Of a DNA stretch of 64,000 bases, positions 15,697 to 27,026 are shown piece by piece. The notes under the pieces were generated by a model. The model searched no databases. It was not told where the DNA came from and worked only from the letters and a program-made list of their open reading frames with translations. The translations under genes were made by a program, and so were the position numbers. Where the stretch lies: positions 23,498,001 to 23,562,000 of the forward strand of contig NC_135764.1 in NCBI RefSeq assembly GCF_052425735.1, in the 5' to 3' direction. Source of the stretch: Oculina patagonica (taxonomy: Eukaryota). Positions within the stretch are counted from its first letter, which is position 1. Each line of letters starts with the position of its first letter.

Positions 15697-18600
15697 TTAA
15701 GTGGCCTTGTGTCGTTTCCTTGGGGAACATACATCCCCATTGCTTTGCTCTAGAGTCTTCTTTATGTACTTGGCAACAAGTCTGGGGGGTCGCATCTGAA
15801 AGTCCTCATGCTCTTCAGGGGTTAGTCCAACCTGGTCGCCCTTCAAACGGTCCAAAAGAGTGACACACAGTATAGCTGCAGATACACCTGCACGCTTACA
15901 CATTGCCGCAAAGCATACGCTTTCCATTTCAATGTTGCGCACTCCTGCATCATAGATTTTTTGCAGGAACTTGAGTTTGTCATCTAGTGTGTAGTCACAG
16001 AAAGCTCCATCAATCCTTGCTTGCCCTGAAGGATAGCAAAAAGTGATACTCAAAAATAAATCAGTGATAGTGAAGGATAACAAGAATAGCTACAGATATT
16101 ATCACTACTATAGTAACATGGAAAAAATACTTTGTCTGATCATTAAACTTTGATTCATAAGTACTGAATGATGGAAAAATGCTTACTTATGGATTGCTCA
16201 AGTTAATAAGGCTCGGTAGTCTTCCTTGATCTGAAAGATGACAAAATATAGAAATTTTATGCTTTCATCAACACTAAGCTTTCAGGTAAAGTTTGTAAAC
16301 CTTTGTTGCTGATAATGACTTTTTGTGTTGTTGTAATTTTATGATGGTAAAGACACTTACAATCATTTATCAAAATGTATACAAAAAGCTTACAGTCAAC
16401 ACTCTTAAATGGAACCATAAAGACCAGCTCCAGCTGTCCATTAGTGAGGTGTGTAGATGGAGTTTATAAAAGACTGTAGAAACATTCAGTCTGGAGCACT
16501 CTTGAAGAATTAATAAAAGTTAAAACCTCATTATTCTAAATACCTTCATAAAAGTCATGGGTACACATAGTGTCTCCAACTGCTGTAAGTATGTCACCAC
16601 TGCAATCTAACAACTGTTTCTGGAGTTGTTCATCAAGAGTTGCTGGAAACTTCACTACTTTACCTAAAATCACCTGAAAAGAGGAACAATCAAATTGAAT
16701 TTTCCATTATTTTCTTTGGAAGGAAAGTGTGCCATTTTCCATCTCTGACCAAATATATCTTCTCACAATTTTCAACGTAATAAAAGAAGTTTATAATCAA
16801 ATGTGCTTTTAAACTTCACAGAAAAATAATTTATTAATTATTAATCATTTTAATTTTTAATTTCTTTTTAATCTACTATATAATAATACAGTCGTTTACA
16901 CGGGACCGGTCCAGATCGGATCCGGTCCGATTTTCGGGTCGGATAGACCTTCTGTTTACACAGGACCGTTCTGGAACTGGTCCGGAAAGGATCCAAAACT
17001 GGACCTGCTATTTTGCAGGTCCAGTTATGGATCCGTTCCAGAAAGGTCCCGTGTAAACAGAAGCCGATCCGGGCCGGTCCGGTTCGGTTCGGTTCTGGAC
17101 CAGTCCCACGTAAACGTAGCCTTAGAGAGGTTCAACTGTACATTTTATCATACCTGTTCACTAAATGGTTCCAAGAGAGCATTGACTGCAGTTCTTGTGA
17201 TTACAACAGTTCCAGGCTCCAAACCTTTGAGAATAAAAGCTTAATATTAAAATAATGATATCTGTAGGTTACAGTAAGTCTGCATTTGAACCTAGTGCCA
17301 AAATGGCCAGCACATAACTGCACCGCTTACTGAAACATAGGAACTTGTAGTCTACTTCCCCCTGATGGGGTGCTAGTCCATAATTTGCTCAGAGCACACT
17401 AACCCATAGGCCATCTTTCCTCTCAGTTGAAATTTTTTTTAAACATTAAAAACTTCTACGTAGTCACTTAAGAGTCACTATATATAGCTTATAGAATAAT
17501 ACACAAATACTGAGGAAACAATAAAATTAATAATTACTATTGTTTATTATTACCTAAGCCTCCAGATGTGCCAATGCGGAAGAATTTAACATCTTGTGCT
17601 TCAGCATAATGCAGCAGTTTGAGAATTTCATGCAAAATGACGATAACAGAAGGAACTCCAATGCCATGCTGTGTGGATAAAGAATTGGAATTATAAGCAA
17701 GTCAGAAAAAATAAATGTTTCGTTGTCTTAAATATTTACAACCTTGTAAAACCTGATTTTCTCAGTTAAAGGTATATACATTGCTGACAGCAAGAAGCCC
17801 AGAAGTCTCACCCCCTTATTAATTAACGTTAACTTATTTTGTGCAGATTTACAATGTAATCCAATCAGAACTCAATTGGAAATTGTTCATGGCCTTTGAT
17901 TGGATAATGACTGCACAGATTAATTTTAATTAAAAAGGTTGTCAAACTTTTGGGCTCTTTAAGCACCATGGGGGGGGGGGGGGGGGGGGGGGCCCGGGCC
18001 GAAGGGGCGGGAGTGACCCGGGGGCGGCGGCCGGCGGCCCACCCGCCCGGGGCGAGGAGCGGCGCCCCCCCCCGGGGGAGGGGCCGGGGGAAGGGAGCCG
18101 GGGGACAGGTGGGCGTGGGGGAGGGCACAGCCAAACCGAGCGAGGCCGTGGACGACGCCCGAAGACACGAGAAGGGCCCCGAGGAAACAGCAATTTACAT
18201 AGGCACTTAAGGGCTTTTTTCCCAATAAAAAAGGCTTTCAGTCTCAGGCATATATTGATGGCTCATGGTACCTAGAGATGACCTCAGTGACTGGCAAGTT
18301 AAAACCCTATCCTTTTTCCTCTGAGAGTCCATGGCTCTGTGAACTCCCAGCTAAACAGAATTAAACGTTTGTAGCTTTCCTGGATCAGAAGTGATAATTA
18401 TAATAAATAATAATAATAATAATAATAAAATATTTATATAGCGCCAACATCCTAAAAGTTCAAAAGCGCTTTACAGAAGTTAAACATTAAAAATTTTCAA
18501 AACACTATTAAAAAATATATATATATATATATATAAAAATAGTAAAAATGGTACAAAAATGCTTACAATCTTACGACTAATAAATTACACTTAATTACAA

Positions 18601-19779: not shown

Positions 19780-21899
19780 TTCCTTCTATCAAAAAATTGA
19801 TAGTTAATAGTAAGAAAAGGTAAGGCCATAGAATCTAAAAATCAAATTGCTATGCTAGTGGTCGACTCTGGTTTTTGTGGCGCAGAGAGGGCCTCACCAA
19901 GGGTGGGAGTTTGACTATTAATAGAGACCCAAGGTTGGGGGACTAAGTGTACGTGGGTAGGGATATTGACATCCCCAACAGTCCCCTAGGTAAAAAGTTT
20001 TACTCAGTTCCAATCTTGGAAAGTGGAGAGGGGCTGGCCAAGGGTAGGAATTTGACTCTCAATGGAATCCAAAGGGTGAGGAAATTAACATTTGAAAACC
20101 TGAAAATGTCAAATTCCCATGCGGTTGCCTGCATCACTGCCCCCCCCCCCCCCCTCATCCTGGCACAAACCATTGATAGGTGCATTACGTTTCCCTAATA
20201 ATTTGCCAGTACTCATTCATACCATGGTGGAGATACTGTGAGGGTTTCTTGGCCAACAACACAACACATGTATAAAGCATAATCCCAACCTGGACATCTT
20301 AAATCCAGAGTGTGTTGCTCTAGAAATATCCATACTCCTACTGTGTAGGTTCTCTTTGCAACACCGCCGCCTTCCCTTTATTTTAGCACCCTGAGGGTGG
20401 GATGGATAGGGGTATTCTCTGGAATCCACAGAATTATCCAGCATTCTAGCCTGTAGCCTGCAAATACAGCCACCTCTCATCGCTCCCGCTATTATGTGTG
20501 AAACACAAAGAGAGACGTTGTAGCAGGAGCAATAAGACTGCTGCTGTATTCGCAGGCTATCTATATCGTGTCCCACAATATGTTAATATTTGATTTCAAC
20601 CTAATATTAACTAAACTAGGGTTAAAACCCCCAATGCACTGTCTTACTCTATAGTGGTAGCCCAAGGTTATGTCATAAGCAGAATTTTATACATTAGGCT
20701 AGGATTTAGTTTTATTGGTTACACTGAGGCTCATTAGTAGCTGGGCCTTCCAAGGTCCTAAGCTTCAAATTATTACTGTTTTCATTTTGCTGATTGCCTT
20801 TATATTGGCCACTCTGGACTTTGCTGCACTCGAAAATCACTACATATGTTTCGTATGGCCTTCCTAGTCAGTCAATAAACATCTGATATTCGACACCTGC
20901 ACACCCCCGATACGCCCCCTTTATTCCCCCGGTCTGGTTTGTACGTGTTTACGTACAAGCAAAATGACTTGGAATAAGTTATTTATTAAGAATATTGTAA
21001 ATCACTGCCACGTATTCCCATTTAGGCGGTTCGCAAAGCAGGAGAACAAATAAACACGTGTAAATTTGAAAGAATACTGAGGTCAAAGTTATTGTTGACA
21101 TCTTTACGCGACCAGCAGAACGCCACAAGTACAAACTCTGAAACGAAAATCACAGCTAACTTCCTTGACCGATCTGTCTTGAAACCCTCCCCTGGAAAAC
21201 AAACGTCTTTAGCTAACTGGAGCGGTACGGTATGACCTCAGGGTATTTAAGCTATTTCCTGTTTAGTCTGTGCTTGGAAAAACAAACTTTTGCTCCCACT
21301 CGACGTATCTTTGCGTAATCCATCGTAATCTTATCGTGAGGGGGCCTTAAGCTTACCTTGCCCTTATAAACGTTTTCTAGCTTCCCTCAACAACCTGATA
21401 CTCTGAACTATTGCAGCAATTCCTGGACTGCAATAACTTGGTTGTGCAATCTCCCACCAAACTACAAAAGGCGACAACAATAGAGTAATAGAAGTACAAA
21501 TTTATGCAACGATCGAACGGGGTACGGGTACGACTCGCGGGCTCCTCTCTCGAACAAGCGGCTGGTTCACCGGGCAATATGTGTCGCCATACATGAAGTA
21601 TTTACCCAAGCCTCCTCTACCGAGGTCCACTTTCAGTTTCTTTCTGATGTCGTACCGCTTATTCTGAACACACAGAAGGCGGAAGTCAACTTTTTCCCTT
21701 GCACACGGAAAAAGAAGCCTGACGGATTACTTTTTTGGCAAACGAAATAGTTAATTACGTACAGTGACATAATTTGGCCTTTTTTTTTCCGTTTTCCTTA
21801 AATTCAGAAAGAACCTTACCCAAGCGACTGTATGTTTGCTGTTTGGTACAAGTTCCAGAACAACTACACATTAGCTCACATTCCAAGTCTGCACATTTT

Positions 21900-24588
21900 A
21901 TGGAAAGAAAGGTTAATGTGAAGCAAAGACCGTTGTCTCCTCGTGGTGATCCATTCGACCAGGAGGAAGACGTGCTTGACTACCCGGGACTAGATGATGA
22001 AAGTAATGGCAGTGGGCCTGTGTCGAGAGAAGCACATATTGCTCTCAGAAAAGGTATTGCAATGGGTATTGAAGCTTTCGATAAAAGGCTTTTGGTTCCC
22101 TTAGAGTAACAAGTAACTAAAACCAAACAAGAAAAGAAAGACCCAGTGTTTGAAGTGTGAACTATCTGGTATCTCCCAAAACCTTGAAACAAGAATTAGA
22201 GGATGATAACTCAGCAGGTTTTGCAGGAGAATGCCAATGACATAACATCAAAATAATATATTGCATCACTCTTTGCTCACTCAATTCTTCCCATTCTTTA
22301 GAGATTCTGAGATGCAACACAAATTCTATTGTGACGACATATATATAGCTCAACAGTGAACCACACAGTGTCTCTGAATGGTTGTTACATGTTGATAACA
22401 ATTCCGAAAGAACTGAAAGAACAACCAGCGAGACACCAGCTACTCAGATCTCTGTAGAGCTAGGTATAGATTAGAACATTAGTATTTTTCAGGTCAAAAC
22501 TTAGATGTCTTTTTAGCCTGCAAGCAGGATTGCTTTCGAACAATGAGTCACAATAAGAATCAGTCAGTTACTAGTGAGGCCTGGCTCCTATCTCATCAAA
22601 TTTTCTTGTTCACACCAGTGAGGAAAGTGAGCTGACTCGTTCTTGCAGCTTGGCCACTTATATGCAAGACCCTATAAGTCAGATTGCTTGCTAGCTAATG
22701 TCTCAAAGAACTGAGCATGAAAAGAGAGACATCTCTTCATTCAGCTAACATCCATTTTATTTTGTTATCATTTGTCAATATTTAGGAGATCTTTGGTTCT
22801 TAGTACCATTAATAAGTGACATCACTGATGTTGTCAGTTGATAACAGTGATGCCAGTGCATGTCGTAGCCAACAGCTAGTGTTATTGGCAATCAAATTAT
22901 AAAAATCCAAATGATAGTGTTCATGTTTGTTACTTATTAATTGTCACTGGCTGCCTTAAATCATTAACAATCAATTACAAATGAATGACCTATACACAGA
23001 CAAATGTGCAATCTTGTCCCCAGAGCCAGTGCGCAAGAGCAAGAAAGTGGCCAAGTCTGATTTGAAAGTCTGTGATTCATGTTCTTCCAGTCGTAGTGCC
23101 CAGACTCACAGTTTATCTCACTCAAAGCTGATTGGCTGACAATCAATAAAGAGCACTTTGCACATGCTCAAAATATTGGACTTGGCCAGAGTCTACATTC
23201 TTGGTGCTGACCAAAAGAGCAACAGGCTCTGGGGATGAGATTGACACAAGTACTGCAGCGTTAATGATATTACGTAACTTACTTACTGACTGACCGACCG
23301 ATTTACTTACTTACAATCAGTTACAGTCAATTTCTATTGAAGTACCCATAGTCAGGAGATGACATAGTTGACAGGAGTAAGTGTTTGTCAGTAACTGGTA
23401 TATCGTTAATAGAAATAATATTCAAGTTACTACAGCTTATATTAGAACTGACTGGGCTGGGATCTTGGACATTCTTTTGTGGCACTCCTGTGTGTTATTG
23501 TTATTGTTCTTTTTGTGCCTAGTGCAATAATACAATTTAGTTACTAAATGTTACCTTTCTGAATCTGCACTCATCAGCATTTGAAAACCTCAAGAAACGA
23601 TTTTTGGGGGCACAGGCAAGGAACTCTGAGCTACAGGGACAGCTAAAACAGAAAGATAGGAAAGGATCACATGAAAGAGTTTATCAAGAAAGGGATGAAC
23701 TACTAGGTCATCTGCAGAAGAGCTATCTTGCTTTTAAAGAAAAACATGGTGAAAATGAAGAACTAAAGAAGATTATTCAAGAATTGAAATTAAGTCAGGA
23801 AGCTAGAGCTCAGGTGTGTGTTTGCTCTTGCAAATTTGAGGCTTGCTGGTATATATGTGTGTTGTTTCACATTGATCGCGCTGTATAAGTACCACCAGAT
23901 TAAATTATTAGACCATACTTGTATATATCAAGAAGGTAACCTTCACTAACACTCGCCCAGCAAAGAGAAGTTTTGCTACTCCTGGCTACATACAAACACT
24001 ACATTCATTTTGTAACTACCTAGTACATACTCCCTACCTACATGTACCTACTTACCCTTCCACCTTATTATAATCTACTTACCTACCTCCCTACCTCCCT
24101 CCCTCCCTCCCTACCTACCCCTACCTGCCTGCCTGCCTGCCTACCTAACTACCCACCTATCTACCTGCTTACCAACCTACCTACCTACCTACCTACCTAC
24201 CTTCCTACATACATACCTACCTACCTACCTGCCTGCCTACCTCCTACCTACCTACCTACCTAATTACCCACCTACCTGCTTACCTACCTACCTTTCTACC
24301 TACCAACCTTCCTACCTACCTACCAGCCTAACGGCCTTTCTTCCTTCCTTCCTTCCTACCTACCTACCTACCTACCTACCCATCTACCTACCTACAACCT
24401 ACCTAACCACCTACCTACCTACGTATGTACCTACGTACCTACTTAACTAGCTACTTACCAACCTAACTTCCTACCTACAGCTGTACGTACCTAGCTACCT
24501 TTCCCTACTAGCCAACATTTCCTACCTACCTACTTACCAACCTACCTACATGTACCTAGCTATAATGTTCAACTTCAGCTATACATCC

Positions 24589-24619
<31 letters not shown>

Positions 24620-26336
24620 CTCAGTTTATTCATTCTTTTTATTTTCTATTTTCAGAGCAAAGGTGATTCACAACCTGGGTCAACCTCTGAGGAAGAAGGA
24701 AAACTAGAAAAGAAAAAATATACAACAATAGTTGAGGAGTTAAAAACGATTGGATTGGAAGTGGTAGAAGAAAATGATCAGTTATACATAATATTAACTG
24801 ACAGGGATAATCTGAAAAAATGGATAGAAGAAAGATCGGATGGGAATATAACGCTATATATTAAAGGAAGTACTTTAGAGGATAAAGCTACAGAAACAGA
24901 AACAGGAAAAGAAATAATATTAACACGACAGGAAGATTATGAGCAAGCAGAAGGGAAAAGAAAAAGAGTTGAAGCTGAGGTTATTCTTCTAAGGCAGAAA
25001 ATCGAGGATCAAGCACAAGAACTGAATCGGTTTTATAAAGTCTTTAAAGAAGTAATGACGCAGAATAAAAATTTAAGAGCAAAGGGACAGAGTAATAAGG
25101 AAATTGAAGATGGAAATACAAAAGGTGATGGATCTTTTTGTTTATGTTTTAAGATACAATACAGTGGAATGCTTTGAATTACAATACACCGCAAGACGAA
25201 GTGACTTATATTTCAATATGCACAAGGGCCTTTAGGCCAGTGTGACAAGTGATAACACATAATTCAAATATAAGAGACAAATAATTACTATACTACGGTA
25301 ATTATCATAATTACTACAATAATGGTAGTAAATAATTGCTGGTTCGAGACCTGACAATCTTGAACAGTTTATAAAAAATTCAGCTAGAAATCGTAACTGG
25401 AATTTTTAAAAACGTACACATGTAGCTTTTTCAACTTTGCCGCCGTTTATTATTTAAAGGAAAACCTGAGATTTAAATTCTCTTTTGAAATTCAATTCGA
25501 AAACCATGTAATGAGCTGTAGTCCTCGTATTTTGTATTTCTTTATTATTATTTTTTCTGTAGGCTTCTCTATGGTGAGATCCATCTTTATTTTTAAACCT
25601 TCTTGATTTCACTTCAGGTCTACCAACTTCACAGCCAGATGAAGCTCCCGTGAAAATACCGACAGTGCAAGAAAAGACTGTTTTTCAGAAGAAAGCGGAG
25701 ACAATGTTGTCTGCAGCACAAGAACAAGTCGTTGAGATGAGAGAAGTAAAAAAGCACTTGGATCAGCAAAACAAAAGTTTGCGTGCTTTGAAAGACCTCA
25801 CAGATAAAACCACCAACGATTTTGAGCAGTTAGTCAGCGCTCCGAAAGCCCGGCAAAATTTTGATGATTCTCGGGGAATTTACCCGGAGGGAAGAAGCCC
25901 GAGGTGGCCGGAAGAAGGAGCAATATCTTTACCCCAGGGACAAAGTAACAGAGAAGAAGAGAATTTCGAGCGTGTGTTCAGTGATGACGCTCCCTTGAGC
26001 ATGCCCGTCCAGGAATCAAATTTGCACAGATTTAAAAGCAGTGAGGTAGTCGGTGAATCTGTCTTTGCTAAGAGGCTAGGCGGAGGGGGAAATTTCGTGG
26101 CCCCGTCATCGAGAGGGGCCGAAGGCAAAGCGGTTCCCATGGCAACATTTCTGACCGAGAATACGTGGACTGGGGAGAGTGATGATATTGAAGTTATTGA
26201 AGAGGAAGAGGATTTTATCGGCGCTACTCCTTCGCGAGGCAAAATTTGCCCAGTGTGCGAGCGCTTCTTTCCCGATAGCTATGGGCAAAGTGAATTCGAG
26301 CTTCACGTCGACCAACATTTTGCAGATGATGCGTAG
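21900..26336 (+). CDS. TANK/AZI2(NAP1)/TBKBP1-like coiled-coil adaptor with C-terminal UBZ1-type zinc finger, 525 aa
   Basis: Exons 21900-22053, 23578-23813, 24656-25124 and 25618-26336 splice in frame (1578 nt). N-terminal [16 protein letters not shown] and [10 protein letters not shown], coiled coils, a PVQES motif, and C-terminal [25 protein letters not shown]. Confidence 0.75.
24010..24560. repeat. Compound (CCTA/CCTG/CCTT)n tetranucleotide microsatellite
   Basis: About 550 bp of imperfect TACC repeats in an intron. Confidence 0.95.
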
Positions 26337-27026
26337 AAAATCAGATGAAAAATCTCCGTATTTCCTCGAATAATAATTATTGTAACCTTTGTTTATAATA
26401 ACAAATACTTGAACGTGTTTTTTTTTTCGGCTATAAGGCTCGCAAAAAAGTATCGAGAGGATGAAAGTAGCACAAAGTGAACCACGAGCCGAAGGCAAGT
26501 GCTTTTCTCAAATTCTTGAGTGCTGTCTTCACGTCTTCACCTTGTGAGACATAAAGAATATAATCTAGACGTTTATTTTACTGCTCGCTTACAAATGCAT
26601 TTTTATAAAGCGTGCGAAAATCAAATTTTCCTTGCACAGCTGGTATATAAAATATAACGAAACTGAGAACAGTTGAAGCTTAGCAGCGCTCATTTTTGTT
26701 ACCTGCTTTGGCACAAAAAATAGCGTCAAAACTGTACTTTAGATCCCGACAGAGCATCCTCGAGATTGGCTTGAAACTGGAGCTTTATTAAACATGTTAA
26801 ATGGGCGGGATAAACCACTCCGCCCCTACCTTTCCCCGGTTGAAGTCAAAATGACCACCCCAGTTTCATCACACTTTTGATGGTCTCGCAATAAAACAGC
26901 AAAGTGACGTAGATTTTGAATTTTACAAATGCTTTCACACGACTGGTAGTTAAACACAGTTAGAAAAAAAGGTCAGTGATAAAAATTTGAAACCCTGCGC
27001 AGCGTAGGTGCTGAATGTATAAATGA

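Follow-up and report, generated by a model that had tools for sequence, protein, structure and literature searches.

In vertebrates, the adaptors NAP1 (AZI2), SINTBAD (TBKBP1) and TANK determine the sites of TBK1 action in antiviral signalling and in selective autophagy; outside vertebrates they are hard to recognise. SINTBAD has a proline-rich tail, NAP1 is not known to have a UBZ finger, and TANK ends in a C-terminal UBZ1-type finger. For one mollusc, an in silico survey of the immune repertoire reported that TANK and SINTBAD were not identified (PMC9334734). Here we describe a gene of the coral Oculina patagonica located at positions 21900 to 26336 of a stretch of 64,000 nucleotides (NC_135764.1, 23,498,001 to 23,562,000; hereafter the window), which an earlier note had put forward as a candidate for a single ancestral TBK1/IKK-epsilon adaptor combining features of AZI2/TBKBP1 and of TANK. 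Our analysis leads us to suggest, with moderate confidence, that this single-copy gene codes for a divergent cnidarian relative of NAP1 and SINTBAD that would dock on a SKICH-type receptor, read ubiquitin and probably recruit a TRAF. As far as the literature was searched, the family is undescribed.

Along the coral protein, an acidic motif is followed by a NAP1-like coil, further coils, a small conserved alpha/beta block and a last helix, likewise conserved; the disordered tail that comes next bears two short conserved motifs, and a UBZ1 finger closes the chain. SINTBAD presents in the same order an N-terminal acidic-hydrophobic motif, a SKICH-binding coil shared with NAP1, more coils, a helix that leads into a long disordered region, and a C-terminal UBZ1-type finger (see the domain diagram of NAP1 and SINTBAD in PMC11564117). 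It differs in having a TBK1-binding domain (TBD), which is undetectable in the coral protein, whereas the coral tail is acidic and carries PVQE and D-I-E-V-I motifs, and the alpha/beta block is extra to the coral protein. With the available fragments and profiles, no similarity to TBKBP1 emerged outside coil 1 and the finger. NAP1 aligns without gaps with coral coil 1, but its TBD (5EP6) has no detectable coral counterpart. Like the coral protein, TANK is an adaptor of coiled-coil type whose disordered region holds a proline-glutamine motif, which in TANK binds TRAF (SVPIQCTDKT; PMC7215387) and in the coral protein is a candidate TRAF site. The TANK motif is of the minor PxQxT/PxQxxD type and that of the coral is of the major Px(Q/E)E type; moreover, TANK is without the N-terminal coil of NAP1 and SINTBAD (PMC11883510).

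In the mechanism that we propose, the protein would dimerise via its coils, and coil 1 would dock in the fashion of NAP1 on the SKICH domain of a coral TAX1BP1/NDP52-like autophagy receptor. The UBZ finger would bind ubiquitin and the PVQE[ST] motif would recruit a TRAF MATH domain, while ATG8 or FIP200-type partners may be engaged by the acidic D-I-E-V-I motif and perhaps also by EDVLDY at the N-terminus, so that ubiquitin and TRAF signals would be linked to selective autophagy. If this is true, the module of adaptor and SKICH receptor is older than the cnidarian-bilaterian split, and corals possess a candidate link from TRAF and ubiquitin signalling to xenophagy-type autophagy, with relevance for the handling of pathogens and intracellular symbionts.

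Coil 1 resembles the SKICH-binding coil of NAP1

Coil 1 (aa 40-78) is split by intron 1, which falls behind the first base of codon 52 (between K51 and A52), into a first part of aa 40-51 (22017-22053) and a second part of aa 52-78 (23578-23657). When it was compared with 177,635 PDB sequences, residues 33-75 of AZI2/NAP1 (5z7g_C/5z7l) were the top match (E 0.12, 16.3 bits), and a profile of six orthologues from which the window protein was excluded again placed AZI2 33-75 at the top of the PDB matches in the same register (E 0.45), neither value being significant alone. The AZI2 fragment used for comparison was verified as an exact match to PDB 5z7g_C/5z7l. None of 5000 shuffles scored as high as the ungapped score of 59 against NAP1, under each of two null models. 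AZI2 was absent from the matches of a PDB search performed with the N-terminus of the orthologue P0028.

The gapless alignment covers NAP1 36-68. Among the NAP1 residues listed as contacting SKICH by Fu et al. (bioRxiv 10.1101/264085), the window protein retains H38, A40, L41, A44, K49 and R51 (as H46, A48, L49, A52, K57 and R59), and five further contacts show conservative replacements (F39I, Y45F, I48L, S37A and E56Q). A NAP1 mutant that has lost binding is altered at S37 and A44 (PMC11564117).

A TAX1BP1/NDP52-like gene is present on the same chromosome at C7:2879186-2879503 (L009:1399-2082). It encodes a complete SKICH domain (L009:1486-1833) in one exon (Pfam SKICH, 111.7 bits), which is closest to the SKICH domain of TAX1BP1 (E 1e-35) and is followed by an acidic stretch, DDEGTSIMVV, resembling the non-canonical LC3-interacting region (LIR) of NDP52/TAX1BP1. 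A second, partial SKICH match was found at C3:22032318.

The L009 SKICH domain was modelled together with coil 1 of the Desmophyllum orthologue, supplied in two copies. The predicted complex reached an ipSAE of 0.68 compared with 0.01 for the best of the controls, which were unrelated proteins, and thereby passed a score mark attained by 51 of 78 solved complexes and by 2 of 108 mismatched pairs. Three runs had at least 88% of their contacts in common, and the partner pLDDT was at least 79. One helix contributed the equivalents of NAP1 A36, S37, F39, A40, L41, A44, I48 and R51 and the other helix those of H38, Y45, K49 and E56, while the contacts on the SKICH side were the equivalents of TAX1BP1 F14, K24, V55-S58, G97, F99, Q101, C103, I111, A114 and P117. 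On both sides the modelled contacts coincide with the published 5Z7G interface. The model shows likeness, short of physical binding. Together with the database match and the shuffles, it bears out the AZI2/TBKBP1-like N-terminal coil put forward in the earlier note, and it makes coil 1 and the SKICH domain at C7:2879186 a concrete candidate pair.

UBZ finger, TRAF motif and acidic motifs

The protein ends in a UBZ1-type C2H2 zinc finger (aa 495-521; 26241-26321). The finger scored 33.6 bits with Pfam Zn-C2H2_12 (PF18112; cut-off 23.2, E 5e-8) and matched both fingers of TAX1BP1, UBZ1 and UBZ2, with an E-value of 7e-10. The terminal finger seen in the earlier note is therefore real, while its interpretation as a TANK module did not hold, as in the ESM Atlas Zn-C2H2_12 occurs together with the TBD in two clusters of chordate TBKBP1. 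Much of the combination claimed for the coral gene is consequently the layout of TBKBP1.

That the best database matches would be to the TAX1BP1 UBZ was an outcome named beforehand as speaking against the single-adaptor proposal, and this is what was found. TAX1BP1 and NDP52 (CALCOCO) are coiled-coil ubiquitin-binding proteins, as the coral protein is predicted to be, and one might consider the latter a paralogue of this family after SKICH loss, as would be suggested by the best Pfam and PDB matches as well as by the name that NCBI gives to the orthologue in Acropora millepora. We regard such an origin as very unlikely. The similarity is limited to the 27-residue finger, there is one finger and not two, no SKICH match was obtained in the protein or its orthologues, and the Pfam CALCOCO1 coiled-coil profile was unseen at E<=10. 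Furthermore, separate SKICH genes exist elsewhere in the genome, and in the model the N-terminus of the adaptor takes the part of the SKICH ligand rather than that of a SKICH protein. The coral TAX1BP1-like gene with its SKICH domain is hence predicted to be a partner rather than a paralogue.

Residues 363-494 are disordered and contain two conserved islands, F[ED]R...LS.PVQE[ST]...R and TGESD[IV]EVIEEE. The first island comprises 22 residues (25965-26030) around PVQES (26004-26018). In the alignment of 15 homologues, Q and E of PVQE[ST] are invariant and P is present in 14, with A in one, while the surrounding disordered region is variable. Px(Q/E)E is the major consensus for TRAF1/2/3/5 (PMC7215387). 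Since roughly 0.4 matches of the PVQE type are expected by chance per protein of this composition (an estimate), the case for PVQE[ST] as a candidate TRAF-binding motif rests on its conservation.

The second island is an acidic-hydrophobic motif of 15 residues (26169-26213), a candidate of the LIR or FIP200-interacting region type, in which all 15 homologues share ES-D[IV]E[VA][IL]. Both PVQES and the D-I-E-V-I motif are conserved throughout the orthologues, a point on which the earlier proposal had been staked. The window protein reads ESDDIEVI, with a one-codon D insertion (26178-26183) in what is the most conserved of the short motifs, while all 14 of the other aligned homologues have a single D ahead of the IEV/VEV core (ESDIEV, ESDVEV or ESDIEA).

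A further acidic-hydrophobic motif is found at the N-terminus (aa 21-34; 21960-22001), where E[ED]V[LF]D[FY]PG[VL]ED is conserved in all orthologues. It precedes coil 1 by 18 residues, compared with 25 in NAP1, and it is a candidate for a FIP200/ATG8-type site placed like I11/L12 of NAP1, the residues altered in the FIP200 mutant I11S/L12S (PMC11564117). A scan of the genome for ATG11/claw domains yielded nothing at E<=0.01.

Possible TBK1 binding and the weighing of the proposed NAP1/SINTBAD relationship

The last long helix (aa ~301-362; 25659-25844) keeps its hydrophobic pattern in the most distant homologues and was modelled by AlphaFold2 with a pLDDT of 79-89. By position and conservation it is a TBD candidate, and it may recruit a coral TBK1/IKK-epsilon-like kinase, an idea that we hold tentatively and with some doubt. 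A TBK1/IKK-epsilon-like gene is present at C10:4053858-4064755 (- strand), where weak exon-wise matches to TBK1_ULD (28.7 and 24.4 bits) and TBK1_CCD1 (24.4 bits) were obtained.

Several results weigh against the reading of the gene as a NAP1/SINTBAD relative, and those on the TBD also leave the TBD signal expected in the earlier note without support. The Pfam TBD profile PF12845 gave no match at E<=10 in the exon pieces or in seven scanned homologues, and a genome-wide scan with it gave none at the locus, the best match elsewhere reaching 17.9 bits (cut-off 27). When the NAP1 TBD, confirmed as PDB 5ep6_A, was compared with the window protein, the similarity was no better than with shuffles (p about 0.65). 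With the last helix placed in its best register to this domain, a glutamine stands opposite L226, one of two leucines of NAP1 at which replacement by glutamine abolishes the binding of TBK1 (PMC11564117). With regard to coil 1, besides the E-values, the complex was modelled with the coil of an orthologue, of whose 19 contact residues 13 are identical in the window protein, and no other coils were among the controls. Because the complex has already been solved (5Z7G), its score may reflect the memory of the model. Finally, an exhaustive phmmer search with exon 4 found no bilaterian or vertebrate match beyond the finger at E<1e-3, and residues 20-400, taken without the finger, had generic coiled-coil neighbours in the ESM Atlas (0.84-0.86).

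The protein could instead be a coiled-coil UBZ adaptor of the cnidarian lineage, unrelated by descent to NAP1, SINTBAD and TANK, whose likeness in coil 1 and in short motifs is convergent or due to chance. The E-values of 0.12 and 0.45, the exon 4 search without a bilaterian homologue and the absence of the TBD in scans are in line with this explanation, independent origins are conceivable for short linear motifs and for SKICH-binding coils, and the alpha/beta block is unreported for the vertebrate proteins in the literature covered and has no Pfam match. However, two different queries each placed AZI2 first among 177,635 PDB sequences and did so in one register, the order of acidic motif, SKICH coil, further coils, disordered tail and UBZ is that of TBKBP1, and the modelled interface equals the crystal contacts residue by residue. 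We consider convergence rather unlikely.

Alternatively, the gene could be of the type that preceded the duplication into TANK, AZI2 and TBKBP1, encoding a functional TBK1/IKK-epsilon adaptor in which the last helix is a divergent TBD and which also binds TRAF, ubiquitin and FIP200. All evidence for the NAP1/SINTBAD relationship counts here as well. In addition, the gene is single-copy and the genome has no other Pfam-TBD candidate, the conserved helix occupies the TBD position, the conserved Px(Q/E)E recalls the TRAF site of TANK, and the language-model neighbours of the whole protein in the ESM Atlas include TBD-bearing chordate clusters (0.93 and 0.90). This is opposed by the negative TBD tests and by the last helix alone, which has generic coiled-coil neighbours in the Atlas (0.77). 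The UBZ is common to TBKBP1 and TAX1BP1 and is no pointer to TANK, the TANK-specific similarity is only presumed, and neither phylogeny nor synteny lends support, the nearest T-box gene being Brachyury-like and not Tbr1/Eomes-like. On balance, a full ancestor-type adaptor appears unlikely, if worth serious consideration. What stands of the single-adaptor proposal is the single copy, the NAP1-like coil, the UBZ1 finger and the conserved PVQE and acidic motifs, whereas the TBD, a TANK-specific UBZ and a match to the AZI2 IDRDNLK segment found no support.

For the relative of NAP1 and SINTBAD that we favour, the lack of a recognisable TBD is the more interesting point. An ancestral NAP1/SINTBAD-type adaptor could have bridged SKICH-type autophagy receptors, ubiquitin and TRAFs without a canonical TBD, TBK1 recruitment being a bilaterian or vertebrate addition or being achieved by another cnidarian element such as the last helix or the helix-hairpin-helix block; we think this scenario distinctly improbable.

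Gene structure and transcription

The gene is conserved among stony corals, and it is both transcribed and spliced. Its four exons on the + strand (21900-22053, 23578-23813, 24656-25124 and 25618-26336) join into an open reading frame (ORF) of 1578 nucleotides, corresponding to 525 codons plus stop, and all three introns are of the GT..AG type. Exon 1 encodes aa 1-51 and the first base of codon 52; it starts with an ATG upstream of which there is an in-frame stop and no earlier ATG, and it ends at a GT donor. Exons 2 and 3 are bounded by AG and GT, have transcript joints and, like exon 1, match the orthologue profile. Exon 4 follows an AG acceptor, includes the stop codon TAG (26334-26336) and has a 100% self-match as its sole genome copy. 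When the 529-Mb assembly was searched with the orthologue profile, matches were obtained to these four exons and nowhere else, which identifies the gene as single-copy.

Contigs from four public runs cover the exons only and skip all three introns precisely at the predicted joints; although these runs are labelled only as guessed RNA, their contigs do skip the introns. The joint between exons 1 and 2 (22051/23576) is present in four runs and that between exons 3 and 4 (25122/25616) in three. A single contig of 759 nucleotides spans exons 1, 2 and 3 with one mismatch and extends the 5' untranslated region (UTR) to at least 21743, the position at which the transcript contig of run X2 begins before continuing into exons 1-3, so that the minimum extent of the 5' UTR is 21743-21899. 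The 3' UTR extends at least over 26337-26600, as transcript contigs run on to the end of the examined stretch. The earlier gene model of 525 residues at 21900-26336, including its junctions, was thus confirmed.

A second transcript form is 90-95% identical; its exon 2 is longer by 42 letters at the end (23785-23813), and its exon 4 starts differently (25618-25645). Because the genome has one copy of the gene, this form probably stems from related species or strains within those runs.

Every motif listed in the earlier note was found at its place, including PVQES at aa 416 and CPVC...FELHVDQHF at aa 497-521. The other quoted motifs start at aa 45 (16 residues) and at aa 97, 176 and 473 (10 residues each). 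All of them, except for one 10-residue match, fall within blocks conserved among scleractinian orthologues.

Intron 1 contains a stretch (23012-23339) with many transcript contigs at high depth and with loose ends at 23178/23216 on both sides. It looks like a dispersed repeat, that is, a small transposon-derived element transcribed elsewhere, and not like an exon. In intron 2, about 500 bases of an imperfect (CCTA/CTAC)n-type tetranucleotide repeat are followed by a (GTCT)n run (24040-24630); read mapping skipped 24072-24453 and 24580-24626 as repeats.

Further domains

The layout was derived from the orthologue alignment and an AlphaFold2 model of the orthologue P0028 and is given in window residue numbering. 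Coiled coil 2 (aa 82-130) contains a 10-residue KSY motif (23712-23741) in which L..SY.A is invariant among orthologues. This motif is presumably similar to the 'NKAY.A[FY]R' of TANK and AZI2 ('LNKAYEAFR' in TANK). The 10-residue stretch at aa 176 had been likened to the AZI2 segment IDRDNLK; this identification was rejected, as the stretch belongs to a distinct helix-hairpin-helix block and lies some 70 residues beyond the KSY motif, whereas the two adjoin in AZI2, and the match is probably due to chance.

The block in question, a helix, a beta-hairpin and a helix at aa 147-205 (24704-24880), contains MGLEV and is among the best-conserved of the family. It has no Pfam match. AlphaFold2 predicted H-E-E-H at low confidence, and the block folded alone reached a pLDDT of 58, a confidence insufficient for searching fold databases. 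Coiled coil 3 (aa ~222-283; 24929-25114) corresponds to AlphaFold2 helix 214-281 of P0028, with a pLDDT of 87-89. A Foldseek search of the AlphaFold2 model against Swiss-Prot returned generic coiled-coil matches with a TM of about 0.1, among which rat AZI2 at rank 23 is meaningless.

Relatives and naming

An exhaustive phmmer/HMMER search with exon 4, which encodes the C-terminal 238 aa, against 1.84 billion representatives gave only 21 matches. These form two groups, a small family of cnidarian type that is alike along the whole exon and proteins sharing the zinc finger only. Word-indexed protein searches returned cnidarian sequences only, and the finger region of P0044 as query gave just 4 candidates. 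The full-length relatives P0028, P0029, P0044, P0027 and P0002 share 48-69% identity with the window protein, and the acroporid relatives P0004 and P0022-P0024 about 40%. More distant last-exon ORFs (P0003, P0005, P0006 and P0009) originate from metagenome or assembly contigs, and the distant locus L007 displays the same four-exon layout.

The names given to these proteins at NCBI and in public records are inconsistent and range from "tax1-binding protein 1 homolog B-like" (Acropora millepora) and "lamin-like protein" (A. muricata) to "uncharacterized" (A. digitifera) and "hypothetical / UBZ1-type domain-containing" (Desmophyllum pertusum).

Genomic surroundings

The human TANK, AZI2 and TBKBP1 genes each lie beside a T-box gene of the Tbr1 subfamily. 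The sole T-box gene on the coral chromosome is located at C7:23162821-23163577 (L022, - strand), 357 kb upstream of the adaptor gene. Its T-domain contains HRWKYVNGEWVSGGKPEP and IKYNPFAKAFLDAKER, including the HRWKYVNGEWV signature, and is presumably of the Brachyury type. Eomes/Tbr has been reported absent from cnidarians (PMC7535936). Synteny with a Tbr1-type T-box gene, considered as a further link to the vertebrate adaptors, accordingly found no support.

The upstream neighbour of the adaptor gene lies on the opposite strand. At 15700-16083 of the window (- strand), an exon of a uridine-phosphorylase-like gene was recognised by Pfam PNP_UDP_1 (E 7.5e-7), and this gene possibly shares with the adaptor gene an intergenic promoter region near 21500-21900.

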